The position numbers and the translations under genes are program-made. Positions 30,546 to 48,630 of a stretch of 64,000 bases of DNA are shown here, piece after piece. Position 1 is the stretch's first letter, and each line of letters begins with the position of its first letter. This DNA comes from Rhodosorus marinus CCMP1338 (taxonomy: Eukaryota > Plantae > Rhodophyta): the NCBI GenBank assembly GCA_029953675.1, contig JAMWBK010000001.1, positions 1,860,001 through 1,924,000 of the forward strand, given 5' to 3'. The notes under the pieces were generated by a model. That model worked only from the letters and a program-made list of their open reading frames with translations, made no database searches and was not told the origin of the DNA.

Positions 30546-31603
30546 ATGAGGACGTTCGTGGAGACGATCGCGGAGGAGTATGGCAATCGCAGCGAGCCGC
30601 CGGAGATTTTTTGCTCGTTGAGAACCAAGCCGAGCGTTGATGAGCTGCTGGGTTCTGTATCCTCGAATGTTTCGTTGAATGGGGGCTCTGTTACCCCTTC
30701 CCACAGAGGGCTGCAAGGTGAGTAGCGAGGGCCTGTGCGCGTAGCAGTTGCTGTGCGTTTGGAAGGTTAGTATATTGAGTTTCGATGGTTTCGTCTGCTC
30801 AGGGACGGATGACCATGATTACCCTGACACACCCGGGAAGGGAAGTGGAAGTGGCTCAACCACTCCAAACGTTTATTCGTACGCGGTCGAGGGTGGCAGG
30901 GACAGCGAAGAGTTCGTTCTTTCGCCAGTATCTGATGAGGGTGCGGAGTATTCGGAGAGCAATAGGGAGGACAGGATCTTGCCAAAGAAGGAGAAACGTG
31001 TGAAGGCTCAGAAATCTGAGTCGACGGTGGAGGTGAGATTTGTTTGGAGTGGTCCGGTGAAGGAGGCTGTATATTTAGTAGGAGATTTCGCTGGTTGGGT
31101 TGAGCGTGTACCACTAGAGCCGCAAGGGAACGTATTTCTGGCCACGCTTGATCTCGAACCCGGACTGTACAGATTTAAATATATTGTAGACGGTGAATGG
31201 AAACATGATGAGTACGTCCGCGCGCTAATTGTAACCGCCTTAATGTCCGCTCGGGCAGCCTAGCTGATTGGATCACTCGTTTCCTGTTTCTTGCAACAGA
31301 CGCCGAAGGACTCATGTCGACGAACATGGAAATGTGAATAATGAAGTCAGGGTTGGTCTGAAGCCGGTCAGGTTTGTGTGGAGAACGGGAGCGAGAGAGG
31401 TCGGAGTAACAGGTAGTTTCTGTGGGTGGAAGCATGTTATCAACCTTGTGCCTGGCAGTGGGGAGGAGAGGAAAGTGTCGATAATGGTCCCGCCTGGAGT
31501 GTACGAGTACAAGTTCATCGTAGATGGGCAGTGGCACCTCGATTCCAATGCACCTAGTCGGAAGAATGCCACTGGGCATTGGAATAGTGTCCTGAGGGTA
31601 TAG
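30546..31603 (+). CDS. Protein with two tandem CBM48 (AMPK-beta type) glucan-binding modules
   Basis: join(30546..30717,30803..31211,31300..31603). Module 1: VRFVW...VYLVGDFAGW...LEPGLYRFKYIVDGEWKHD...GNVNN. Module 2: VRFVW...VTGSFCGW...PPGVYEYKFIVDGQWHLD...GHWNSVL. Confidence 0.85.
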
Positions 31604-31810
31604 GCTTACCTGGACGTTGGCTAACGATTTGCACAAACCCCCGTTGCTGCTGAACTTTACCCGCAGCTTTTTAACTAATGTATTATGCAATACGATCTCA
31701 CTGTATCTATAGAATACCGTAGCTTTGTGAATCCAGAGTTGAGCTGTTCGCCGCCGAAGTAGCGAGACAGTTCTTCTCCATTTCTCAGCTAACATATTGC
31801 TGAAACGTAT

Positions 31811-32389
31811 TCAAATAAAGTATTTCGCAAGAGCTTGGAATTCACGTGCTGAACCTTTCCAACCAGGAGCGGGCAAGAGCTTGTTCTTCTCCATAACGAA
31901 GTTTTTCGACTCCACCGGGTCGCCCTCTCCATCCTTCACATGTGCATTGATCACCTCAGAGACATCTGCAGTACCCACCGCTACTTCGTAAGAGTTGAAC
32001 AACAAATAAGTTTCCTGGTCCCCAGCACGATAGATTGTGCACTCGATCTCCTGAGTTTCAGGGTTGGCAGAAATTTTGCCAAACCACGACTAGACAAATC
32101 ACGAAACGGAATAAGGCATGTCAGTTCTCCTGATCCGCTTCTACGCTTCCGAACCTCTTCCAGGATCAGCATGCGGATAATCAAACGGCGCACATACCTC
32201 GGTCGTCGCACCATAAACGTCAAACTTAAAAACGCAAGTAGAATCTGGGATCGGCGGGGTGTCCAACGGAATAATCGCTTCCCCTCCCTCACCTCCAGGA
32301 ACAATCACGAATCTAACCGTGTTCGTCTTCCCGAACGTTGATCTCAACAAGGAGATCAAACATATCACAAACACCACGCGACTGATCAT
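31811..32389 (-). CDS. MYDGF/UPF0556-like secreted protein, 156 aa
   Basis: complement join(31811..32089,32198..32389), phase 0. Signal peptide, then VRFVIVPGG, TCVFKFDVYGATTE-SW, IECTIYR and TYLLF, colinear with human MYDGF VAFDVRPGG, TCMFTY..GGTNEQW, FTCTIWR and SYLYF (recalled). Confidence 0.8.
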
Positions 32390-32964
32390 CGCCACTTCAA
32401 ACGAATACACAAAACAAAACAAAAAGGTGATACAGTGGTAATGAAAAAAATACGACGACGTAGGTGTTCACCCTTCTCACGCGACACTGAACTCCCCAAA
32501 ACGACACAACAACCCCCCGTTCCCAACCACCTCGAACTCGTTCTCCCAAGTGAAGAGAGCCTCACGCCAGTACGTCACCACACTAAGCAACACACCTGAT
32601 GACCACGCAAGGACAGAGGTAAACCTTTCTAATGCCTTCCCGATCGGATTGTTACCGGTCACATCTGGTATAGAAGGGGCACCGGTCGACGTTTCGAAAC
32701 CCGAGAGTAACCTGAACACTTTTGGATTCATAGAGAGCTGGAGTGGTGAGGACGCTGCAGCCCCTTCTGAATATCTGTGCTCACACAAAGCCAACTTCAC
32801 ACAGGAATCGAATCCAAGTGGAGAGTAGCACGGTCATGGACGAGAGAGATCGGGCGAAAGGGGCCTGAAGACGAGTCTAACGATTACAAAGTTTTGTTTG
32901 ATATGGCGGTGGTGGGGATGTTCGCGGAGTATAACTGGACAGCTGTGCAATAGATTCGACAGCT

Positions 32965-34447
<1,483 letters not shown>

Positions 34448-34626: not shown

Positions 34627-35259
34627 ATGGCCAGGACAAGATTCTCTGGTCCTGCTCTCCTCACACTACTGCTCTGCTGTGAGCAGAGCAGTGAGCAGAG
34701 CAGTGAGCAGTTCGTTGTTGGCGAAGAGAGCTGTGAATCGTTAGCGTCTTGTATACTTTTTCGGTGGCCTTTAGTAGGTGCGGGATCTTCTAGAAAGGAC
34801 TTGCGACTGTGGATTATAGTGCTGTACATGATTAAATGTTGTTCATACTGAGTAAGAGCCAGTCCTTGTCAAAGGCGTTTCATTCCTGCAGATGTCGACG
34901 AAGGTCATTGGTGTGTTGGATTTCCTAACCCTCCATCCGAATCACCAGAGCAGTGTAGCTTTCAGATTGAGGTCTGCGATCCACTTTCAGGCTTTTTCCC
35001 CACTGCAAAGTTACACGTGTGCTTTTCCGGACCTTCTCCAGTCAACGCCCAAACTCTCCGTTTCAGGTCGTATGGTTCTAATCTGGATGGACTTGTCCAG
35101 GCAACATTCCTCAGCGCAAACCTGCGCACTACTTCAAACGCTGTGATCGAACCATTGAACAACACTTCGGAATGGATGAGAACGACTTTCGATTCCGTCC
35201 CTGTCCCCTTCACACTCGAAGGATGTGTAGCTTGCGTCGTCGGGTACTTCTACTATTAG
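34627..35259 (+). CDS. Putative secreted cysteine-rich protein of unknown function (about 157 aa)
   Basis: Signal-like ALLTLLLCC. Tentative join(34627..34732,34892..35259); the second exon is stop-free for 121 codons, has 6 Cys and ends GCVACVVGYFYY*. The donor choice is uncertain. Confidence 0.45.
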
Positions 35260-35553
35260 TCGGCTTTGGAATTCGATGGGGTTTCGTGTTCGTTCCAGTC
35301 AACGCCCAAACTCTCCGTTTCAGGTCGTATGGTTCTAATCTGGATGGACTTGTCCAGACAACATTCCTCAGCGCAAACCTGCGCACTACTTCAAACGCTG
35401 TGATCGAACCATTGAACAACACTTCGGAATGGATGAGAACGACTTTCGATTCCGTCCCTTTCCACTTCACACTCGAAGGATATGTAGCTTGCGTCGTCGG
35501 GTACTTCTACCATTAGTCGGCTTTGGAATTCGATGGGGTTTCGTGTTCGTTCC
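35037..35553. repeat. Near-perfect tandem direct repeat, 257-bp unit x2
   Basis: Units 35037-35293 and 35294-35550. I count 5 substitutions between the copies. Confidence 0.95.
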
Positions 35554-35691: not shown

Positions 35692-36957
35692 ATGGATGAA
35701 CAGGGTGACGCTGATCAGGACGAATTGAGGAAAGAGTTTGAAGCATGGAAAGAGCAGATTGGAAGGGAAGATGAGATGTTAATGAAAGCTGAGGCTGAAG
35801 ATGAAGACAGGAAGTCGAAGGAGAAGAGCGTGAACAAGAGTAATCCTGCCGTTTTGATTGAAGATGTACAGAGTGCCGAGGCAAGGGAGCGTGGAAATGG
35901 TCTCTTTGGGGAAGGAAAGTTTGAGGTGGCAGTTCAGTGGTACGATGCGGCTGTTCAAGGAGCGGGATCGGAAACGGACAGAGCGATCGCGATGAACAAC
36001 CGGAGTTTGGCAAAGCTGAAGCTGGGCGACGCACATGGTGCAGCCGCGGATGCAAAGGAGGTTCTTTCGTACGGAACGCTCGATCCACAACTGCAGCAAA
36101 AGGCGTCTTTCAGGTTGAAGGCAGCTCAAGAGCTCCTCGAGATGGGAGAGGATGCACTGCGGGAGAAGGGAAACGCGGCCTTCAAGCAGGGGAATATGGT
36201 AGCCGCGAGGAATCTTCTCACATCGTCCATAGAGAAATTGGGGGATAGTCTTGCGCTCGGTCTTAGCAATCGCTCGTTAGTAAACCTGAAGCTTAAGGAC
36301 TATGCTGCAGCAGAGAAGGATGCCTTAGACGCGCTGCGCCTGGAACTGCCGGACCAAGTCCGAAAGAAGGTACTCTATAGACAGGCGACTGCCGTAGCCA
36401 ACCAGGGAAGATTTCAAGAGGCCGTCGGTCTACTCGAGCATATGATTTCCGAGTATCCGGACTCGACAGAAGCTCAATCGGACCTGAAAACCGTCAAATC
36501 CAAGCTAGGGTCCGGCCGAAAGGAACCGCAAGCTGAGGGGTTCCCTGCGACAGGCCTACAGTTTCCCACAGAGGTTCCTAGCGAGGCTCCTTCAAGCTTT
36601 TACCAGTTTGAGTTGCTTTGGAGAAACTTCGCACGGAAGGGCGCCGAAGGCCACAAGCTCAGCCTATTGAAGCAAATAAGCCCGGAAAAACTCCCGCAGT
36701 TGTTTGGTGAGAGCCTCAGCCCCGAGTTCGTAGAGGACATGGCCAGAGTTCTGACACGAACGGAAGAAGAAGATCACGAATGGCTTATGGATGCCCTGGA
36801 ACAGCTCGCCAAAACTCGACGGTTTGACCTGGTGCTTCTGAGCTCGCCCGGAGCAAAAGCATCTTTCAGCAAGCTGTTTGACCGCCTCTCAAGCGAGGTG
36901 AAGGACCAGCCCTCAGATTGGGAAAGAACCAGCTCCCTTAGGAGAATCTATTTGTAA
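35692..36957 (+). CDS. TPR co-chaperone, RPAP3/Spaghetti-like, intronless
   Basis: Two TPR clamp blocks (RERGNGLF...NNRSLAKLKLG; REKGNAAFKQG...SNRSLVNLKLKDY), followed by an RPAP3_C-like PSSFYQFELLWR...LPQLFGESL...RRFDLVL domain. Confidence 0.8.
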   Translation: MDEQGDADQDELRKEFEAWKEQIGREDEMLMKAEAEDEDRKSKEKSVNKSNPAVLIEDVQSAEARERGNGLFGEGKFEVAVQWYDAAVQGAGSETDRAIAMNNRSLAKLKLGDAHGAAADAKEVLSYGTLDPQLQQKASFRLKAAQELLEMGEDALREKGNAAFKQGNMVAARNLLTSSIEKLGDSLALGLSNRSLVNLKLKDYAAAEKDALDALRLELPDQVRKKVLYRQATAVANQGRFQEAVGLLEHMISEYPDSTEAQSDLKTVKSKLGSGRKEPQAEGFPATGLQFPTEVPSEAPSSFYQFELLWRNFARKGAEGHKLSLLKQISPEKLPQLFGESLSPEFVEDMARVLTRTEEEDHEWLMDALEQLAKTRRFDLVLLSSPGAKASFSKLFDRLSSEVKDQPSDWERTSSLRRIYL

Positions 36958-37993
36958 AACGTCGCGGGCGTACAATTTCGGCACGACCGACCTTCAAGAA
37001 CAGAGGCCAGAAGGACCTGGTAGGACTTGCACAAAAAAGGAAGAGGCGAACGCCCAAACCTGTATCGTAGGATTCTATGAACACCTATTTTCAAGCACGC
37101 GACGGCTTCAACGGTATCCAAAGTTGGTCTTCGCACACCATCGGTTACCAAGCTGTCCACTTTTCGTTCCGACTGGGAAACTAGAATGGGCGTGAACGAG
37201 ATACTCTGTATGCGGCAAGACAGAGGAGTGCGAGACTGACATCGAAGTGTTGGCCTCCTCAACGGAACGAGGAAGGCTTCACAGAGCGAAAAACGCCACC
37301 CACAGAATCAGAAAGGACTGAGTCCTTGAATTCGTTCTACAAGCACGTCTTGCCCATGCTTGCGCCATGAACTCAGCCCAACGACCACCGAAGGAGACGC
37401 AATGCTTAGCTTTTCTTCGAATATCAGAATCTCTGGAATTTTAACCGTTCGATCGGAATACACTAAAAACAGTAACAAAACTAAAAATCCTGATTCGACT
37501 TGATGCTGTGATCTGTCCCAACGCTGGTAACTGCAATTTACGCATCCACAGGCTCTCTTTCCTAGGACACCCAGCCTGGATCATTATCATTTCAAGGAGA
37601 CCACACGCTACAGTGGTTTACTACCAGTCATCCAACGAGACCATCATCAACCTACGTGCTGTCCAAATGACATTACAAACCAAACCATTTTTCGAGTTCG
37701 ATTGCGACACCAACAAGAACCCCATCAAATTTCAACGCATTTTAACATCTACAGTTCTTATTTAAAAATGAAGTTTTTTCAAGAAAGTCATCAATGCTTT
37801 TGCACATCCAGGATTGATTAGTTTCAAAGGAAATAGATATGAAACAAAATACCATGGAAAATATTGAGAATATTATTCCACATTTTGCCGGTGTCAAATT
37901 TTATATGATAAATATTATCTAAAACGAGCTTGTTTCATGTTCATGATAAAATTTATGAAAAAGCTATTGCGTGCTGATTTTCATTTTTTTTCT

Positions 37994-38007
37994 CAACTGT
38001 CAGCCGG
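37994..38007 (+). promoter_or_regulatory. Family-associated upstream element CAACTGTCAGCCGG (copy 1)
   Basis: About 370 nt upstream of the ATG at 38373; identical 14-mer at 43953-43966. Confidence 0.5.
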
Positions 38008-38372
38008 AAATATTGTTTCTGTTGATGTACCCCTTGCTTACACCTATATCAAAAACAATAATTCATATATTATTGTTATTATTTAAAGTATATGGTATTC
38101 GTTGGAGTGGTTGAGGGGGTGCACGAAGGTGCTGTTCTTGATCTGTTGCTGTCGCGCGAGTAAGGGCTCGCGCGAGCTCTTTGGTAGTGGGCAACGACAG
38201 GGACGAGAAGCCGCTGGGCAGGATCTTCGCTACAAGAGCCAATTCCCGTCGTCTAGTTTTTGGTATAAACAGGATCGAGTTACCCCCTTGATCACTGCCT
38301 CGCACGTGCGATTAAGTCATCCGAGGTAAGGACTATCTGCTCTTTTTGCTGATCTGGTAGTGGTTTTGGAGA

Positions 38373-38660
38373 ATGTTCAACAGATATGATCCAGAGAACA
38401 ACGAGTGGGTTGAGAGTGAGAGGAGGTACCAGGAGGAATTGAGGCGGGCGTACAGGGAGGACAGCTGGGCTGAGAGCGACGGCTATAGGAGGTCGAGCTA
38501 CAATTCTCGACGTCACGGGGCACCGGGGTTCTGGAGACGGAACCGAAACGCCTTGTTTCTTGGAGTGGGAGGAGCACTCGTGTTTGGAGTCCCGGGAGCA
38601 GTGGTAGGCACGTTTTATGGTGTCTACAGCGACAAGAAGAGGAACTACAATTCCTACTGA
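38373..38660 (+). CDS. Small glycine-zipper membrane protein, paralogue 1 (95 aa)
   Basis: Charged N-terminus, then FWRRNRNALFLGVGGALVFGVPGAVVGTFYGVYSDKK. GxxxGxxxG in a hydrophobic stretch; three paralogues nearby. Confidence 0.75.
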   Translation: MFNRYDPENNEWVESERRYQEELRRAYREDSWAESDGYRRSSYNSRRHGAPGFWRRNRNALFLGVGGALVFGVPGAVVGTFYGVYSDKKRNYNSY

Positions 38661-39138
38661 CGCGGAAGATCGAGCTCGAATGAACACGATGCTACGAGTA
38701 TTCCGATAGTGTTTGCAAAATTAGTATTTTCAGATTTTTCTTCAACAGTAAACCGCATTACACGTCATTCGTGAACTGTAGCGGGGTAGGATGTTCTGTC
38801 TGTGTCTTCCCACACACTCCAGTGCTTTAAAATAGCAGTGGCGCACTCTAGCACTGAGAAAGCCAATCTCAAGAAGAGCCATATTCACGCTTTTTGTTAG
38901 TACCTACGAAGGACAGGGAGGTGGACGGGAAGATGGATAGCGCTGTGTTTGGTTGTTATCAAGCAAATCTGGAAGAGCTCGTGCGAGCTCTTGGGTAGTG
39001 GGGAATGAGAGGGATGAGCACCAGATCTCTTCGATTTTCTGCACTAGAACGATTCCCTGATCGAATCTAACATCTAAAGGCACGCAAGTTAGTGATCGTA
39101 CTCACGTCGTATCTTTCGAGATCCGTACCATCTGCCTT

Positions 39139-39435
39139 GTTCTGGTACCAGATTTCTACGATCAATCACATTCCGTCCCATTGCTAAGTTGCTGCTGGCA
39201 GTGGTCCTTACAGACTGTTTAACAGAAACCGTCCAAAGGACAACCAGTGATCTGTTACCAAATTTCTACTATCGATCACAGTTGATTTACCAAGCTACTG
39301 CTGGCAGCAGGGTTCCTTTGGACAATCTTTCACAGATACCATCCAAAGAGCAACACAACCTCCACCCGTTCTGCTCGCAGAATTATACGATCGATCACGT
39401 TTGATCCCATTTCTAAGCTTGCTGCTTTCAGTGCT
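39139..39435. repeat. Three degenerate tandem copies of a 110-119 bp unit
   Basis: Units start at about 39139, 39249 and 39368. They share TCTG..ACCA.ATTTCTAC.ATC.ATCAC and CT.CTG.CAG-like motifs; units 1 and 2 also share CC.TCCAAAG. Confidence 0.55.
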
Positions 39436-39816
39436 CCGTCCATAGAGAAAACAAAGATCACATCCAAACGGACAGCCAGCGGGCGTGAAACCAACTAGTT
39501 CTTCGTGAGTATCAAACCACCCCCGGTCTTCAATTCCGTAGGTAACCATAGAAGAAGATGTTTATAAAAACGTACGTCACTTAGCGTTCCCAAGTTGTCC
39601 CTGACCTCAGTACTCGCCAGGCCCGTTAGAGCTTAACTTTCAAACTTGAGATAGGAGCCGAGTCCACGTTCGAGAGGTAGTGAACGGAACTCAAAAGGAG
39701 TACTGGAAAAGAGAGAGTGACCGTTCAAATCATGGCTGCTATTGGTCAAACCTAAATATAATTTTAAAGAATAATTTACAAGGATAAGTAATGTGAAACG
39801 TTGTCATCTATCATGA

Positions 39817-39827
39817 CGGCTGACAGT
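39817..39827 (-). promoter_or_regulatory. Family-associated upstream element CGGCTGACAGT (copy 2, inverted)
   Basis: Reverse complement ACTGTCAGCCG, about 400 nt upstream of the pseudogene start at 40224. Confidence 0.45.
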
Positions 39828-40223
39828 AGAATCTGAACGGGATGATTTGTATCGGATGAATTGAAAGGGAATGGCTATGGGATTCTTATATAATCCTGTG
39901 TAGGTGAGAAGTTGTAGGTCGCTCGGCATAGAAGAATAGAGAGAGAGAGATAGAGAGGCGCAAAGGGAAGGCAAATAGGAAAAGGCAAAGCCACTGTAAG
40001 GGCCGTAGACCCGCTGGGTTAGTGGGGCACGGAGCTGGTCGGTCTGATCTTCCGTACCAGAAACGAGGATAGGAGATCATCGGGTTTTAGGTATAATAGG
40101 ATTGAGGGTAGATAAAACTCACTGGGAGTCTCTCTAGGTGAGCATCTGCTTTCCTTTTTGCCGGATTTCTATGGTCGCTTACTTTTCATCCTTTTGTCTC
40201 AGCTGGTGTTGATATTTTGGAGA

Positions 40224-40562
40224 AGGCTCAACAATTATGATCCAGAGGACAAGAAGTGAGGTGAGGGTGGTAGTATACAGGTCAAGTGATGAATATATGG
40301 CGACAAAGCGGGTTGAGAGTGAGAAAATACCCCAGCTCAAAATTTTACCGGAGAACAGAGGGGGAGGGTCCCTCAGAGGGAGGGCGTTAGGAGGCAGATC
40401 CCCAATTCTCAACGTCGTAGGGCACGGAGGTTCTTAGGACAGAACCAGAACGCCTTGTTGTTCGGAGTGGGGACATCACTCATCCTTGGAGCCCCAGGAG
40501 CAGTGGTAGGTACATTGCTTGGTGTGCATATGGACAAGAGGCGCTACAAAGATGTGCGATAG
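40224..40562 (+). pseudogene. Glycine-zipper family paralogue 2, pseudogene
   Basis: Aligned to paralogue 1: ATG>AGG (40224), TGG>TGA (40257), an insertion of about 50 nt and a frameshift. The C-terminal block FLGQNQNALLFGVGTSLILGAPGAVVGTLLGVHMDKRR is intact in another frame. Confidence 0.75.
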
Positions 40563-40994
40563 TGCGGAGGTTCAATAAACACAATGGTCCGCAGAGTTTC
40601 TGGTCATATGAAAACGAGATACAACAATTGGCGGTAGTATAATTTGTTTTCGAACTATATCTAGGCAGGGTGTTCTGTCTGTGTCTTCTCGCCCACCTTC
40701 ATGCACTCAAGTAGTACCGAAGATCCTCCAGAGCTGAACCACAGTTTCTCAACGCGCTGAAAAACCTCCACCTGGATTCGCTGTCCAAAGCTTGCGGGTG
40801 TACATAAACACATAGAGAACTGAGCGTCAACTTGAAAACGGTTCAGTACGGAACAGAGAGTTTTGACTATCAAAGACCACAGCGTGGACTGGTCTTCTTT
40901 ACTGTACCTATAACGCGACATGAGAAAACTAGTGTTCTACTTTGCTTCAACTAGCTATCGCGGGGTTTTATGGACGTAGACGCTCACTCGCATT

Positions 40995-41300
40995 TCATGA
41001 GGCGTACGTTGCGTCGAACTTCTTCCTATCCATATGCAGACCCCACAAGGTGCCAACTACCGCTCCCGGAGCTCCGAATACCAGGGCACCACCAGTACCT
41101 AAGATCAACGCGTTTCTGTTCCGACCCCAGAATGAGGGATTCTTCCCGTGCTCAGAACAACACGACCTCCGAAAGCCGTCCTTCTCAGCCTTGACGTCTT
41201 CCTCAACTCCAGCTTTCAGATTTTCCTCCTCCCATTCACCTTCATTTATCTGAGGGTACTGAATGTGGTGATTGTCCTCACTATCAATTTTGCTAAGCAT
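40995..41300 (-). CDS. Small glycine-zipper membrane protein, paralogue 3 (101 aa)
   Basis: Acidic N-terminus, then FWGRNRNALILGTGGALVFGAPGAVVGTLWGLHMDRKK. Confidence 0.75.
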   Translation of the reverse strand: MLSKIDSEDNHHIQYPQINEGEWEEENLKAGVEEDVKAEKDGFRRSCCSEHGKNPSFWGRNRNALILGTGGALVFGAPGAVVGTLWGLHMDRKKFDATYAS

Positions 41301-41673
41301 CGTCTCTTAAACTGGCCCCCTTAACCCGCAACTCAAAAAAAAATCCAACTCGCAAGCCTATTCAAACGATTCGCTATCCTTCTACAACTTCTCTTCCGAT
41401 TAGTTACTCCTTACCAACACGAACAGTACCAACTCTACTTACTGCAACTCTCAGCCTCTTATACCATTCACAGCAGCATCGAGACCTTGCCCACCGAGCT
41501 CCAGCAGTCCTCCCGTTGCATCAATTAATCCATTGCCATGCACCGACTAAGTCGAATTTGTACCCCCCGTAAAAAACTCAAAAAGCCTTCGTTTCTTCCT
41601 AATTATAACAAGTTATGATTAGTAGCTCAATGAGAAAATGCAAAGTAAGGGGGAAGATCTCTAGTACATCTTT

Positions 41674-41682
41674 GCTGACAGT
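41674..41682 (-). promoter_or_regulatory. Family-associated upstream element (copy 3; ACTGTCAGC on minus strand)
   Basis: GCTGACAGT on the + strand, about 375 nt upstream of the minus-strand ATG at 41300, in the same gene-relative orientation as copies 1 and 4. Confidence 0.45.
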
Positions 41683-41718
41683 CATCGCAAGCAAAATGGA
41701 TTCGACCCTTCATGGTGA

Positions 41719-41807
41719 GCAATGAATTGAGTAAAATTTATACAGCACACTACCGGACCGCGGGTTGTGCAATGAATTCAGTAAAATTTATAGAGCACAC
41801 TACCGGA
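41719..41807. repeat. 39-bp direct repeat x2, period 50
   Basis: GCAATGAATT[G/C]AGTAAAATTTATA[C/G]AGCACACTACCGGA at 41719 and 41769. Confidence 0.9.
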
Positions 41808-43581
41808 TGGCTTCGAACCGTTTTTTCTACTCGCACTGTGCAGCGCAGTCGTTCCGCATGTAAAACTGTTATTTTTGTTAGTTTTTACTGAACGGATTTC
41901 TGCTTCCACCGATCTGTTTCGTACGATGAAGCCAGCGAGGACTTATCGTCTGACTATCGTCTCGAGATGGACGGTTGAACTGGATATATTGTGAAGATTT
42001 GGACTTTGTTATGCCCTGGCGTTTTCGGATGACAGCGTTAGGCAGTCCATGCGTGTGAGGAGTGGGCGGCTCTAGTGAAGTGGTAACGGGGATGAACGCT
42101 GATGGTTGTGGCTTTCTCCGTCTGCGCTGAGGCCTGAGAGTCTAGGGCTGTTCTCTGATGCGGTTTGGACTGCTCTAGGGACCATAGTCAAATATTGGGA
42201 AGGTAAGCTGCTTGCAATCTTCTCAGTGAATTTGCTTGTGCGACCGGAAACCCGGACGGGAAGAGCTTCATAGTACTCGATAGTACGTGGCGCTATTGGA
42301 TAAAACAAACCCCTTCTCTCGATAATCATCGCAAGAGAATACCATCAACCGGGGAAGACTGACATGCATGTGCTTCTCCAAACAGGGCAGGTTTCCAGAG
42401 CTCCCCCCAAATGTCCAGACTTGTGGACGCAAAAACTCAACTAGTGCTTCGGAGGAGGGGACCTCGAGAGCGCTTAAATCCCGTTTCGTCGCGAAGTCCT
42501 ACGAAGCTAAAATCCCGACGAACACTCCACATAGTCAACGCACGCTAAAAATTAGTTCCCGATTCGCCAAAAAATGCGAAAAGGACACCCCCAAAAAACC
42601 AGGAAAATATATATCGTATATATAGGATATCACGATCCAAAAAAATTCCAAAAGGTAGTCAGTCGTTTTAATATTGATTGATTCTTGGCCAAAAGAGTAG
42701 AAACCCCAAGAATCCAGGCTGAATTCCTGGTCCATGCGGGTCGATTCTCTCCACTCACGTAAGGCTCGAGTCCCAAAACTAGGCTGGCTCTCTATTGGTG
42801 AAGCCCCCGCAAGGATTGTAGTATTTCATTATTTTTTGGTACTAATTGAATTGTTCGTTGATTCATTTGATTGATATATATATAAACGAATTCGATCGAG
42901 GAGAACGGCTTGGAAGTAGAAAATGATACCCAGTGGCGGAAAGCAGTAGTAGAAGTAGACGTGGTGGGTGGGGAAGGAGACGATATGAAATGCATGGATA
43001 TCTGTTGGACAAAATTTAATTCCTAGTCTTCGGAAGAACCAACAACTGGCTGACGAGGTACTTGTCCGGCACCACCAGACATCAGTGCGCGGCGTTTTGT
43101 TCGTGGGTTCGAATACTTCAGCTAGGGCAGTTCCTCATTAGGAGCCGAAGCTGTTTGGGTTGTTATTGTTCACCCAGTAGGGATCTGTGCAAGACAAGGG
43201 ATCGAAGGCAAACTTACTTACAGTCCTACAAGCTAAGGTGGTGGTTAAGAAAGTCTTGGAATTCGACTTCCTTCGTACGCTCCTCTGTGGATGTTAACTG
43301 AACTCGTGCGCGTTTTGAGAGTTTTCCAATAGAACCTCGGCAATACTACATGTCCCAGTTGAACCCTCTATTCAATTACGGAATCGAGATATTCATTGTA
43401 CGAATAAGTACTGATGAACTGAAAATACCGATCTTTTGTTTATTTCGGTCTGCTGGACGACCATTCCAATCAACGTCTCCTTCCGAATTCATCTTCCACC
43501 CGTTGTCATCTTAAAAATATATTTCTGCCTATCCACGCCAACAATGCTCGAGGGATTGATCGGACGTGAGAGGATGTTTTC

Positions 43582-43927
43582 GATCGCGTCTTTTTCCCTC
43601 ATCAAGCTCCAACTAATCAAGAGATTCTATACTTCATCGAAAAATTGTTTCACTCTCTACAGCTTTCCTCCCAAGGCCCACTCTGAGGAACCGTCAAGAT
43701 ACACACAGGACCGCAAGCTCGTCTTGCACGTCCAGTACGATTTGATCATCCAGATCGTGTCTTTTTCCCTCATCAAGCTCCAACTAATCAAGAGATTCTA
43801 TCCTTCATCGAAAAATTGTTTCACTCTCTACACCTCCCCCCCCCAAGGCCCACTCTGAGGAACCGTCAAGATACACACAGGACCGCAAGCTCGTCTTGCA
43901 CATCCAGTACGATTTGATCATCCAGAT
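43582..43927. repeat. Tandem direct repeat, 171/172-bp unit x2
   Basis: Units start at 43582 and 43753. They are nearly identical except for a few substitutions and a 1-bp gain in a C-run. Confidence 0.95.
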
Positions 43928-43952
43928 TATGCATGATTTGTTCTAATAAACG

Positions 43953-43966
43953 CAACTGTCAGCCGG
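43953..43966 (+). promoter_or_regulatory. Family-associated upstream element CAACTGTCAGCCGG (copy 4)
   Basis: About 325 nt upstream of the ATG at 44289; identical to 37994-38007. Confidence 0.5.
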
Positions 43967-44288
43967 CTTTGATCATAAAAGAAAGCAACCCCTCTGGATA
44001 TTGGGACCTGAAGAGAAATTGATGATTTTCAATTATTTACTTATTGAAGGTTTTGATACATGACAGGGCCGGGCGGGGGGTACGAAAATCCAAATTCAAG
44101 TGGTTGGGTGGATCGGCATTGATGGGGTTTAGAGATGAACAGTGGTGCGGGGATCTGAGAAGATAAGTAGGAACTGGACTAAGGAAGAAGAGATGGCATA
44201 TGTATACATATTTTCAAACTAGACAGACGTCTGAGAAGCACGTTGTCATCTCTATTCTTCTTGTTGTGTTGGTTTGCAGCAGCAGAAA

Positions 44289-44711
44289 ATGTATTGGAGC
44301 GACGATAGTGATTATTTCTCACGTATTGATAGCGACAATGGGTCGTTCGTAGATTCAGAGGAGGAACAGTATCTTGAGACTGAGAAGAAGCTGCAGGAGG
44401 AACTATGGCTATGGAATGCGTACGAGCAGGACGAGCAATTCGAACTGTGGGAGCCGATGGAGCCTTTGGCGTGGCATGAGCTGCGGGAAGCGTCCGAGGA
44501 TGATGTAGTGGAGAACTGCGGACAAGGTGAAACGATACGGAAATCCGGTTCCGTACCTACGAAAAGGCCATGCTTTTGGCGTCTTAACAAGAACGCACTA
44601 CTGTTCGGTACTAGCGGAGCTATTTTCCTCGGCCCCCCAGGCGCAGTGGTTGGGACGATGTACGGTATGCACAGAGACAAGAAGAAGAAGTACGTAAACG
44701 TGTACCAGTGA
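44289..44711 (+). CDS. Small glycine-zipper membrane protein, paralogue 4 (140 aa)
   Basis: Very acidic, Trp-rich N-terminus, then FWRLNKNALLFGTSGAIFLGPPGAVVGTMYGMHRDKKK. Confidence 0.75.
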   Translation: MYWSDDSDYFSRIDSDNGSFVDSEEEQYLETEKKLQEELWLWNAYEQDEQFELWEPMEPLAWHELREASEDDVVENCGQGETIRKSGSVPTKRPCFWRLNKNALLFGTSGAIFLGPPGAVVGTMYGMHRDKKKKYVNVYQ

Positions 44712-44864
44712 TTATCTTATAGCCCGTCCAGACAGTTTCAGAGTGGAAATGCAGTAGAAGAATCCGTTCTAAGCTACATAATTTTGATGTGCGTAAGTCT
44801 AGTTTTTCTATTAGGACGTATCATGTCCTGGAGCAAAATAAAGAACTTGCAGAGTCTAATCAAG

Positions 44865-44958
44865 ATGCGGAACCTCGACAGTCCGTACCGGTTTTAAACG
44901 GCCATCACACCTTCATGCAAAATTAGGGAAGCTCCAATGCGGAACCTCGACAGTCCGT
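44865..44958. repeat. 22-bp direct repeat x2, period 72
   Basis: ATGCGGAACCTCGACAGTCCGT at 44865 and 44937. Confidence 0.85.
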
Positions 44959-45209: not shown

Positions 45210-46586
45210 ATGAGTCTGTCAGAGTTCGAAGTAGAGTCCTGGATTGAAAAATTCAGATTGCATAGTCCCAAGACTAGGTTAATCCGGTTGTCGAGGGAGG
45301 TCTGTGAGTATCTGCTCGAAGACAACCTGATAGTCCGGTCTGGTGAAGCAGTTGAGTTGCCGTCCTGAAAAGGCTCTTTCAAGGAAAGGTTCTCCTTCGC
45401 TTAATAAGGATATTTTCTTGCGCTATTTTGACGCTTCTTCGAAGGATAATGACGTCTCCAGTGACTCCGACACCGACGGAAGTGAGGATGAATCAGCCGG
45501 AGCGTTGTCGGCAAAGACTATCGATTCGTTTCCTGAGCTGAAGACGGAGGTAGAGGAGGCAATTCAAGCTCTGGGGGGGGAAGTGGCGCCTAAAGTCGGG
45601 TCCAAGTCACCTGTTGATGCCTCGTGGTAGGAGCGAATATGCGGAGCTCTTGTTCACGGTCCGGGGACTGAAAACTTGCTTCGAAATCACAAAACAGGGC
45701 AAATTTCACTGGGCAGACGAAATGCAAGGACTTTTCCGAAGTTCTATTGCTTATGAAAGCCTCCGATAGAGTTGCAGACGACGTTTCCACAAGGTTATTG
45801 CTTGGACAGCCCACTTTTTTGATCCTCAGAAAGTAAGGAACAGAGATCATCGAGAAAGAACCAGACGTTGCCAACGGTTTAATCTCACGACGCTGTCACT
45901 CTTTATCTTGCGCTCTAGATGGTCCTCCTTGCATCCCAGTATGGAATTTAGAACTTTCATCAAGCAAAGAAGAGTACAAGCGATCTGTCAACGGGATGAT
46001 GAACAGCACTATCAACATTTAGAGGACGACGCTCCGAAGATTGAGCATGCAATAGAAGGTTTCTTTAACGATACTATGAAAGGTCAGTGATCTACTCAAC
46101 CCAAGCGCATCAGACCAGAGGGAAACAATCCTGACGCCAACGCATGTGAATTGCTTCTTTCTTCTTCCAACAGAGAAGATGAGTGGAACAGAATATGTGA
46201 TGGACGTCTACGTGGACAATGCCAGTCGAGTCTGGCTGATTGATTTGGCTCCCGCTAGAGATACTACTGATGCGCTTCTCTTTACTTGGGCAGAGCTCGA
46301 TGCATTAGCTGCTAACAGCCGACCAGAGTTTAGGTGCGTTCCGATCTATCTCCTTCCACGGAAGCTTCCGGCCGCGATTCGAGGACGAGATTTTCTACAA
46401 GCTCAGGCTTTAGCTGAGGAGTTGCTGAACGTTGTTTCGCCTTGACGATTTAGGGTATTGGCACGTCATAAACGAGCACCAGCGAAGAGTTTGTACTATG
46501 GAATTCCCTATGAGTTGCGAGGGGAACGTGGATCAGAGGCACTTGCAGAGGCTTCTAAGCGGCTAGCCGAACGACGACTAGGCTGA
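45210..46586 (+). CDS. CDC123: CDC123 (D123) ATP-grasp eIF2 assembly factor, multi-exon
   Basis: Exon segments SWIEKF...YLLED, FPELKTEVEEAIQALGGEVAPK..SPVDASW, LLMKASD, MEFRTF..ICQRD and YVMDVYV..VWLIDL..TDALLFTWAEL. Stop at 46586; exact start uncertain. Confidence 0.85.
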
Positions 46587-46705: not shown

Positions 46706-48630
46706 CTACCATTCCAGCGAAGCCAACGTGGCTTCTCCTCTGCTCTCAAACGTTGTATGGAAGAGCTTGCGGGCCTTATCTGAACCAGGCTCAGCTCCTA
46801 TTAAATCGTAAACAATTTGTACACCTTTACAGTCTTTCAGATCGTCGATCACTGACCCTTGTTTATAAACAGCTTCCACGTTCTCTAGCAAATTTCTATC
46901 ACGAACGTCACCTCCAATCTATTGTTCCCACATCGCAAGAAACAAGCGTGGGACAAGGGAAAAGACCAGTAAATCAGTTGCACGAACTCAGAGAAACGGA
47001 GGTTCGAAGGCTTGCAGTGTCGACGCTCTCTACTGCCCCTGCACTACATCCAGAACCAAGCTAGGAGAAAACAGAGTGACTGAAAATGTGTACCTGACCA
47101 CCTCCATTGTTACAACCACCAGGACAAGACATCATCTCCACATACTGGTACTGACATCTTCCAGCAGCAATGCTTCGCATGATCTTCTGTACATTCTTAA
47201 AACCATACGCTGCTGCAAATTTTATCATGTTCTCTTCTTTGGCAGGGTCTTGCAGAACATACTCCTACACATCGACAACCAACAAGTCAGGTGGCAAGTA
47301 GAGCAGTTACAAAAGACGTTCGATGGAATCACAATGATCGTTTAAAACCGCAATTCTGTTCGCATACCTTGAAATCAGATCCTCTCCCAATCGTTTTGAA
47401 CTGTAAAGACTCAGGAAGTTTGTATCCAAAGTACTTCTCTGCAACAGCCCTAACGGTGAACTCCAGGTAACCGCCAGAACCTACTAGCTCACCAAGGTAA
47501 ACGCTGCCAAGGGCGCCGTGATCACCTCCGAAATCGTCGTCCAAGCTGGTTCTTCTTACCGTGCTTAGGGGACTTTAGGAAGACACGAAACAAAAGGTTA
47601 CGATTCAACATCTTCCCTCCAGAAGGGGCGATCCGAATGCTCCGACTCCCTCATCGAGCCTCATCTGAAGACGAGAAGGAGTAACATACCTGAACGACTT
47701 GATGATGATGGAATCAAGTTCATCCGAAGTTATGACAGAATCCACTTCAGGTGTCTCGTGGTATTCCAGCTCTGGCCTTGCTGCTTCTAGTTTCTTATCG
47801 TGACAAGGCATGACCGTGGCGACCCATACCTTCCTTCCCTGTGCGACCTCAGTTGCGCTCGGGAGTAGACGCTTTGCCAAGGTCGCCAGGATAGCTTGGG
47901 GTGATTTGACCTACCGAAGAAGAAATCACCGACGAACTATAAGCAGCAATAGCTGCTTAGACCGTTCGACTGTGAAAACCTTACCTTGGAGAGTTTGCTT
48001 ATCACTTCTGGTCCTTGTTTCTTCTCGACGTATGAGACGAACCCTGGACAGGCAGATGTGATGATTGACTGCTGCTTTTCAATCTCTGTGAAAACTTCAG
48101 CTAAATGCTCCAACAAGCAAATTCTCCTTGCTAGAGACACGTCGTAGACCTGTGAAAGAAAGCCGTTGAGCTTTTGCCCGTCCTCCCGGCTCTGTGAGCT
48201 CGGAGTTGTGCTGGATTTTTACCCTTGACGCTCCAAGTTCCTTCAGGATGGTGCACAGTTTTTCGTACGTTTCGACCAGGCCAAGCCCATATTTTTCAGC
48301 CACAGAAGCAACCGCCTGCTGAGACAAACCCACGACCGCAAACCGGGACTCGTCCGAACATCCGCTCTCAAAAGCGCGGAGGGCCTCAGCGCTGTCCAAC
48401 AAAATCGTCTCCGCGGAGGTCACACATCCACTACATGTAATACAATCAGACAGAGTCACCCTAGCAATTTTGGCTTGTTCTTCAGACTGCTTTCCATACA
48501 TTGGAGAAGCGAATGACCCGGGCTTGGGCTTCGATGCCGCCTGCATCCCACCCCCGACAGGCAGGATGCAAGCATCGGAGGGTCGAAGAAAATCATTCAA
48601 ATCAGTTAACTTCACAGTTCCCTGACCCAT
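46706..48630 (-). CDS. NAR1: NAR1/CIAO3 (IOP1) FeFe-hydrogenase-like cytosolic Fe-S assembly protein
   Basis: LTDLNDFLRPSDACI, LSDCITCSGCVTSAE, ITSACPGF, VMPCHDKKLEA, EMMSCPGGCNNGG and LFHTTF...W* distributed over several exons. Confidence 0.92.

Follow-up and report, generated by a model that had tools for sequence, protein, structure and literature searches.

A family of small, putatively tail-anchored glycine-zipper proteins known from the red alga Rhodosorus marinus

Introduction

Tail-anchored proteins insert into their membrane post-translationally, with the head left in the cytosol. Repeated small-xxx-small or GxxxG spacing within a hydrophobic segment is common to Gly-zipper_Omp, Gly-zipper_YMGG, Rick_17kDa_Anti 2TM, Transgly_assoc and human C19orf12, and such glycine-zipper domains are usually two-helix or about 40-amino-acid units, often placed behind a lipoprotein signal. 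The glycine zipper itself has been defined by Kim et al. as (G,A,S)xxxGxxx(G,S,T) in a helix (as quoted in PMC8287954), and CYSTM proteins are small proteins in which a variable, non-globular head precedes a conserved C-terminal module of 35–40 amino acids with a single transmembrane (TM) segment, followed by an acidic residue (PMC2804304). Here, we analyse a 64,000-nucleotide stretch of the nuclear genome of the red alga Rhodosorus marinus CCMP1338 (GCA_029953675.1, contig JAMWBK010000001.1, positions 1,860,001 to 1,924,000; hereafter the window), which contains an island of four copies, c1 to c4, of a gene family encoding short proteins with a shared glycine-rich C-terminal block. The assembly of this member of the Stylonematophyceae is pseudo-chromosomal, with a size of 31 Mb and 8392 genes (PMC10250338).

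We find that the family consists of real genes, with transcript-derived orthologues and a block under purifying selection, and, as judged from sequence searches, it appears to be confined to Rhodosorus in current databases. The reading that we favour, with a probability of roughly 55%, is that these are small membrane proteins of the tail-anchored type, restricted to one genus, whose C-terminal block packs helices.

Results

Four copies of a conserved C-terminal block

A six-frame motif scan of the window detected exactly four copies of the block, and these copies match one another by tblastn with E-values of 1e-10 to 1e-24, the next best match in the window having an E-value of 0.25; no fifth coding copy was found in the window by tblastn at E 50. 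The four paralogous loci proposed in the first-pass annotation, which had been made from the DNA letters and a list of open reading frames (ORFs), are thus the only ones in this stretch. Copies c1 (38373..38660, + strand, 95 amino acids), c3 (40995..41300, − strand, 101 amino acids) and c4 (44289..44711, + strand, 140 amino acids) are intact, each being both an ORF and a called gene in GCA_029953675.1. Copy c2 (40224..40562, + strand) is a pseudogene and a tandem duplicate of c1, in which a relic of the block (40431–40544) is still open. The block itself is located at 38529–38642 (+) in c1, where it follows a mixed-charge head, at 41019–41132 (−) in c3 and at 44574–44687 (+) in c4.

The block spans 38 residues, consisting of a basic collar of the form FW-R-x-N-[KR]-N next to the predicted membrane segment, a 27-residue Gly/Ala-rich segment, and an invariant Asp with a Lys/Arg cluster. 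The 27-residue segment has a central Pro, a probable kink, and is devoid of acidic residues and Lys, with the c4 copy ending in one Arg; Cys is absent from it in all aligned members. In eight full-length proteins, made up of the three window genes and five orthologues, F, W, N, L, five G, two A, V, T and D of the block never vary; in the c2 relic, which was aligned on its own, the W is replaced by L. The motif PGAVVGT, previously described as invariant, is so among the four window copies, but not in the orthologues (TGAVVGT in P0002, PGAVAGT in P0004) or in a distant member of the family, P0008 (VGGVAGA), which is described below. The GxxxGxxxG zipper is present in its literal form, as G-x3-G-x3-G at block positions 17, 21 and 25, together with an A/G/S-x3 ladder at block positions 2-6-10-14-18 that is found in every member, P0008 included, and therefore in all five branches (A2-G6-[AS]10-G14-A18 plus G17-G21-G25). 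All members contain the glycine-zipper motif (G,A,S)xxxGxxx(G,S,T), in a helix predicted by AlphaFold2 with low to moderate confidence.

The heads preceding the block carry net charges of +2 (c1), −5 (c3) and −16 (c4), so the description of the N-termini as acidic fits c3 and c4 but not c1. Homology between the c1 and c3 heads extends from end to end, at 49% identity, and the extra length of the c4 head stems from insertions. Common to the paralogues are a hydrophobic-[SN]-[RK]-hydrophobic-D-[SP]-E motif near the N-terminus, an acidic helix, and R-[RK]-[SP]-x(2,3)-S before the anchor, the last of which resembles, and might conceivably be, a basophilic kinase site. We also considered ATG8-interaction and FFAT-like motifs in the acidic heads, and rejected them since the candidates in c4 are not kept in c1, c3 or the orthologues.

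The intact copies have transcript-derived orthologues and the block is under purifying selection

Each of the three intact ORFs has an orthologue predicted from R. marinus MMETSP transcriptomes, supporting their transcription. The orthologue of c1 is P0004 (85% identical), that of c3 is P0002 (A0A7S3E5A8; MMETSP/UniProt; 81% identical), and those of c4 are P0006 and P0011 (MMETSP; 76–77% identical), with third-lineage orthologues of c4, P0007 and P0012, coming from the Logan assembly of SRR32518360 and from MMETSP. In addition, a genomic Logan contig, L002, aligns with window positions 42951–44939 at ~73% identity.

Codon analysis by the Nei-Gojobori method covered c4 versus L002 and the window paralogues, the MMETSP orthologues of c1 and c3 being protein sequence only. 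Between c4 and L002, the 38 codons of the block have a nonsynonymous divergence (dN) of 0.035 and a synonymous divergence (dS) of 0.371, giving a ratio (omega) of 0.096, versus a dN of 0.249, a dS of 0.324 and an omega of 0.77 for the 90 codons of the head; the contrast between block and head in nonsynonymous and synonymous counts is significant (Fisher p = 0.0025). With a block omega of about 0.1, the zipper is under purifying selection. Together with the transcript-derived orthologues, this contradicts both of the refuting conditions set out in the first-pass annotation. Among the paralogues, the dN of the block is 0.21–0.30, and dS is saturated. Between strains, identity is 88% in the head and 82% in the block for c1, and 82% in both parts for c3. 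Fast divergence of the N-termini, as claimed from the single genome, is therefore seen between paralogues and in the c4 lineage, but not between the c1 and c3 orthologues, whose heads match their blocks in conservation.

These data bear on the question of whether the copies could be non-functional, either as chance ORFs or as the decaying remains of a single old gene. A pseudogene is already among the copies, and the proteins are short and come from one genus. Three sets of orthologues from independent strains, transcriptome-derived proteins included, argue against this explanation, as do the block omega and the conservation of an upstream element (see below), and we regard it as very improbable.

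Convincing matches come only from Rhodosorus

Searches of Pfam gave no relevant match at E ≤ 10 for c1, c3 and c4, and none at E ≤ 1 for P0008, P0010 and P0012. The Pfam Gly-zipper families (PF13488, PF13441, PF05433, PF04226 and relatives) yielded no match at E ≤ 10, and the CYSTM profile PF12734 none at E ≤ 10 (c1, c3, c4) or E ≤ 1 (P0008, P0010, P0012). In NCBIfam, only noise was found, in the form of weak matches to the glycine-rich stretch, and the best match in PHROGs, phrog_17658, covers the glycine-rich segment only (E 7e-5 for P0008 and 0.002 for c4) and is not credible. A profile search of PDB sequences returned nothing below an E-value of 0.6, and a Foldseek search of the PDB with the c4 model, which is of low confidence, nothing below 3.7. 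The earlier impression that these proteins belong to no named family is therefore borne out across Pfam, NCBIfam, PHROGs and the PDB.

We further searched 1.84 billion representative proteins with a profile of the block, reading all of them without a word index. Five proteins were retrieved at E ≤ 0.001, namely three family representatives, P0008 and P0009. The match to P0009, a phage tape-measure-like protein of 1398 amino acids with weak SLT-domain traces and repeated glycine zippers, is limited to the glycine-rich segment and was judged compositional. Scanning JGI metagenome contigs with a back-translated pattern produced 144 matching places, none of which was confirmed. Across the protein set and the metagenome scan, convincing matches came only from Rhodosorus, in line with the lineage-specific distribution that had been proposed.

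The block is carried by a second type of head

P0008, the fifth member of the family, is an R. marinus protein of 299 amino acids (MMETSP) in which the same block stands behind a long Pro/Tyr/Gln-rich head that is unrelated to the heads of c1 to c4. Its C-terminus (...F-S-S-N-K-R-A-I-G-Y-G-V-A-G-A-V-L-F-G-D-V-G-G-V-A-G-A-W-Y-G-H-H-K-D-K-K-K) was matched by the block profile with an E-value of 2.4e-5 against the 1.84 billion proteins, and tblastn of this C-terminus against the window matched all four loci, with E-values of 4e-5 to 8e-9. A second isoform, P0010 (309 amino acids), has one extra 'YPPTQ' repeat, both heads containing many PY-like repeats (R. marinus MMETSP; L003 478–765), and P0013 is a P0008 orthologue from another sample. 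No contig encoding P0008 was found, and its gene lies outside the window. Judging from these sequences, the block appears to behave as a portable C-terminal module, present on at least two unrelated heads, in a manner similar to that of CYSTM in other eukaryotes.

The block is a predicted membrane anchor

In c1, c3, c4 and P0008, Kyte-Doolittle averages over 19-residue windows (KD19) exceed 1.0 only within the C-terminal block, at residues 58–69+, 63–73+, 102–106+ and 257–263+, respectively. The heads are charged, with no N-terminal or second hydrophobic segment, and therefore no signal peptide by the hydropathy criterion. The 12 residues ahead of the segment have a net charge of +3 to +4, and the segment is followed by short tails of 9–11 amino acids with a net charge of +1 to +3 (DKKRNYNSY in c1, DRKKFDATYAS in c3 and DKKKKYVNVYQ in c4). 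By hydropathy, the proteins thus show the features of the tail-anchored class, namely a single C-terminal hydrophobic segment, a tail of under about 30 amino acids, and no other TM segment, and they are probably membrane-bound. Since there is no N-terminal signal or second segment, and only 9–11 residues extend past the anchor, the variable head would be placed in the cytosol. A function in surface recognition, as suggested in the first-pass annotation, conflicts with this predicted topology and is unlikely, because no more than 9–11 residues could be exposed on the non-cytosolic side, and the variability does not lie in them.

AlphaFold2 models of c4 and c1, based on shallow alignments of eight sequences, consist of an N-terminal helix (residues 23–52 in c4 and 12–30 in c1), a disordered linker and a long C-terminal helix. 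This C-terminal helix, predicted with a local distance difference test score (pLDDT) of ~74 in c4 and 50–54 in c1, is interrupted near the conserved Pro, in c4 one residue ahead of it and in c1 at the Val that precedes it.

Several observations weigh against a tail anchor with a helix-packing surface. The best KD19 windows are marginal, at 2.09 (c1), 1.80 (c3), 1.53 (c4) and 1.47 (P0008), the unweighted Hessa sum is positive throughout (+2.4 to +6.3 kcal/mol), and an Asp is located inside the P0008 segment. The clustering of Gly on one face of the helix barely exceeds that in shuffled sequences (p 0.05–0.26), and the structural models are of low confidence overall, with a mean pLDDT of 53–57. 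In plants, the dibasic signal of outer mitochondrial membrane (OMM) proteins is a pair within a tail of 3–8 amino acids, at most four residues from the C-terminus and not followed by Glu (PMC4154396); the Rhodosorus tails are longer, at 9–11 amino acids, and their basic pair stands 5–7 residues from the C-terminus.

The marginal hydrophobicity and the Asp of P0008 would suit a soluble oligomerisation or condensation motif, in which the block would terminate an intrinsically disordered protein and assemble into helical dimers or oligomers in the manner of a YG zipper. Soluble glycine zippers do exist, as exemplified by the YG box of SMN, a C-terminal GxxxGxxxG that works in a soluble protein (PMC8287954), aromatic-Gly pairs ([YWL]G) are repeated in the distal part of the block, and most of the head sequence is predicted to be disordered. 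However, an uncharged stretch of 27 residues that is basic on both sides is like a typical TM segment, c1 and c3 lie above the usual Kyte-Doolittle threshold, and the Y-x3-Y-x3-Y register of SMN is absent, making a soluble zipper unlikely.

The break near the conserved Pro, seen in both models, is also compatible with a monotopic hairpin, in which half-helices of ~13 residues around a G-x-P-G turn would enter a single leaflet, or the monolayer of a lipid droplet, and both ends would stay cytosolic. Both G-x-P-G and G-D-V-G-G are turn-prone, and basic residues are found at both ends of the segment. Such half-helices would be short, however, and the small-xxx-small ladder is continuous through the segment, as on one helix. 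We consider a hairpin improbable.

Finally, the literal zipper motif, extended along the whole segment, could indicate a pore or channel former, whose glycine-zipper helices would bundle front-to-back into an oligomeric pore that permeabilises the membrane, in the way of known glycine-zipper channels. The conservation of the block beyond the need of a plain anchor, with its invariant G, A, V and T positions and its low omega, is consistent with this idea, and C-terminal glycine zippers needed for membrane damage are documented for bacterial type VII secretion system effectors in two reports (PMC10434224, PMC12955049). On the other hand, pore formers that are expressed constitutively within the cell would have to be regulated, and the island shows no gene resembling a partner or an immunity factor; pore formation and simple helix packing also look alike at the sequence level. 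A pore appears rather unlikely compared with the tail-anchored, helix-packing reading that we favour.

The copies share an upstream element

The 700-bp regions upstream of c1, c3 and c4 have a single 9-mer in common, ACTGTCAGC. It is located 377 bp upstream of the c1 ATG (37996..38004, +), 382 bp upstream of the c3 ATG in gene orientation (41674..41682, −), and 334 bp upstream of the c4 ATG (43955..43963, +), with the match extending to CAACTGTCAGCCGG in c1 and c4. An inverted occurrence lies 397–405 bp upstream of the c2 relic (39819..39827, −), and the orthologous locus L002 has the element at −353 (L002 941–949). The window thus contains four occurrences, each 334–405 bp upstream of a copy, where 0.54 are expected from shuffling; in random triples of 700-bp segments from the window, any 9-mer was shared within 50 bp of register in 4 of 20,000 cases. 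That the element has been kept although dS between the paralogues is saturated points to a promoter or enhancer site common to them. As a sequence match, this suggests that ACTGTCAGC is a candidate shared cis-regulatory site and that the copies are co-regulated.

The family has expanded by local duplication and loss

DNA alignment identified a duplicated segment of roughly 0.5 kb, with 38342–38835 (c1) corresponding to 40191–40714 (c2), the two being ~1.9 kb apart. Compared with c1, the start codon of c2 has changed from ATG to AGG, a TGG has become TGA and several further stops follow, and the head is broken by a 52-bp insertion and a 1-bp deletion, confirming that this locus is a pseudogene; the reading frame of the block is intact. 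The block omega of c2 versus c1 is 0.58, versus about 0.1 or less for the intact pairs with estimable dS, as expected when one of two lineages is unconstrained. Over these 38 codons, the dS between c1 and c2 (0.50) is above that between orthologues (0.37), which loosely suggests that the c1/c2 duplication is older than the strain split. A potential rescue of c2 can be drawn by splicing, using an ATG at 40237, a consensus-like donor at 40261 (GAG|GTGAGG) and an acceptor at 40376 (CCCTCAG|), which would join the block in frame and yield a product of 68 amino acids (40237–40562, +); no transcript or protein evidence of this product was found.

Upstream of c4, a 172-bp unit is tandemly duplicated with 95% identity (43582..43927) and abuts the shared element. 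The unit is single-copy and still recognisable in L002 (about 711–880), and is a conserved non-coding stretch that was duplicated recently in CCMP1338. Two short stretches on the + strand (39206–39260 and 39317–39354), which are weak evidence in themselves, resemble the first 40–55 nucleotides of the c1 start region, with 62% identity over 55 nucleotides and 79% over 38 nucleotides. Both belong to a small local repeat, with a spacing of ~110 bp, and may be remains of further partial duplications.

The dead tandem duplicate, these 5′-end relics and the saturated dS among paralogues support the birth-and-death evolution proposed for the island: the family has expanded by local duplication, with one copy since dead. 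By contrast, calling the island repeat-rich was an overstatement, as it contains one two-copy 172-bp repeat, the c1/c2 duplicated segment and the two tiny relics, and the whole window has two tandem repeats, of which one is in the island.

Genomic setting

As anticipated from the sequence, the island lies between an RPAP3-like and a CDC123 gene: gene calls on GCA_029953675.1 place a TPR/RPAP3_C protein upstream (35692–36957, +) and a D123/CDC123 protein downstream (45210–46586, +). A 257-bp unit is tandemly repeated twice with 98% identity (35037–35553) directly upstream of the RPAP3-like gene. The wider neighbours, called at 30546–34447 and 46706–48630, are of housekeeping types, comprising an AMPK beta CBM protein, UPF0556, a DEAD-box helicase and an Fe-hydrogenase-like (Nar1/NARF-type) protein. 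Rfam and tRNA scans of the island and window gave no matches.

Long antisense ORFs overlie each of the intact genes, at 38292–38687 (−, 131 amino acids), 40942–41253 (+, 103 amino acids) and 44312–44680 (−, 122 amino acids), and are probably a by-product of codon composition. Since the transcript-derived orthologues and the low omega belong to the sense frame, we take the sense frame as the genuine one. The leader of c4 (44200–44352, +; L002 about 1200–1293) contains an upstream ATG. The upstream ORF (uORF) that it opens does not share the frame of c4 in CCMP1338 but does so in another strain, where it leads to the 164-amino-acid call P0012; we consider it more likely to be a uORF of the 5′ leader than a genuine N-terminal extension.

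Discussion

Our analysis suggests a model for these proteins, in which we infer membrane insertion, topology, oligomerisation and target organelle. The block would act as a post-translational membrane anchor and targeting signal, with the head remaining in the cytosol, where a short motif at the N-terminus would be followed by an acidic helix, predicted to be amphipathic, and by a basic, disordered linker with R-[RK]-[SP]...S. The small-xxx-small ladder would pack helices tightly, in homo-oligomers, in hetero-oligomers or with a partner membrane protein. A block serving at once as anchor, targeting signal and packing surface would be constrained beyond what a plain anchor requires. Because the segment is weakly hydrophobic and flanked by basic residues on both sides, the outer membrane of an organelle (mitochondrion, plastid or peroxisome) would fit better as a destination than the endoplasmic reticulum.

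A more far-reaching version of this model is tentative and, on balance, doubtful. Here, a portable glycine-zipper tail-anchor module born in Rhodosorus would target proteins to an organelle outer membrane and assemble hetero-oligomers or channels, the island would represent a young nursery of co-regulated genes, marked by CAACTGTCAGCCGG, duplication, death and 5′ relics, and the module would have been recruited onto the P0008 head.

Red algae have small gene inventories, and microprotein families restricted to one lineage, where transcribed and under selection, may be a route by which such gene-poor organisms acquire new functions. The island offers a compact and bounded case of this kind, in which genes have been duplicated and lost, heads have diverged, the module has been reused on another protein and a cis element has been kept. 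If the block is an autonomous targeting and oligomerisation signal, it would constitute a second class of CYSTM-like module, and would also provide a handle on the tail-anchor sorting rules of red algae, which to our knowledge are essentially unstudied. Otherwise, this would be an orphan family of modest general interest.

Among known systems, BNIP3/NIX and phospholamban combine a disordered cytosolic head with a self-associating C-terminal TM domain, which contains a glycine zipper in BNIP3, and phospholamban has a basophilic R-R-x-S-like site upstream of this domain, comparable to the Rhodosorus linker. They differ from the Rhodosorus family in that there is no sequence similarity, and no ATG8-interaction motif is conserved in our alignment. 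Kinship with one-helix LHC/HLIP proteins, raised by a resemblance to N-x-x-A-[LM]-x-x-G, was rejected, there being no conserved Glu, transit peptide or Pfam match, as was a divergent Tom22 or Mic10, with no Pfam match and a family that is multi-copy and genus-restricted. Compared with the glycine-zipper families mentioned at the outset, the Rhodosorus proteins have a single C-terminal segment of 27 residues and no signal peptide.

The tail-anchored proteins of the plant OMM (Cb5-6, TraB, PMD and FIS1) are similar in having a moderately hydrophobic C-terminal segment, which is a TM domain in the plant proteins and a putative one here, no presequence, and a Lys/Arg pair just after this segment that is not followed by Glu. 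The uncharged segment is longer in Rhodosorus, however, at 27 residues versus fewer than 21, and the plant rule was defined in angiosperm cells, not in red algae (PMC4154396).

In architecture, the likeness is to the tail-anchored stress proteins of the CYSTM type (PF12734), with which the Rhodosorus family has in common a length below 150 amino acids (c1, c3 and c4), a variable non-globular head, a C-terminal single-helix module followed by an acidic residue (here the invariant Asp), a Pro/Gln/Tyr-rich head in P0008, and several paralogues per genome. The two differ in that the TM helix of CYSTM has a patch of 5–6 Cys, in place of which the Rhodosorus segment has Gly/Ala, and in that CYSTM is pan-eukaryotic, whereas this family is found in Rhodosorus only. 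The resemblance, as drawn by comparison, is one of architecture and not of detectable homology. By this analogy, the family is a new, genus-restricted instance of a known architecture, that of small, putatively tail-anchored proteins with a conserved CYSTM-like C-terminal TM module.

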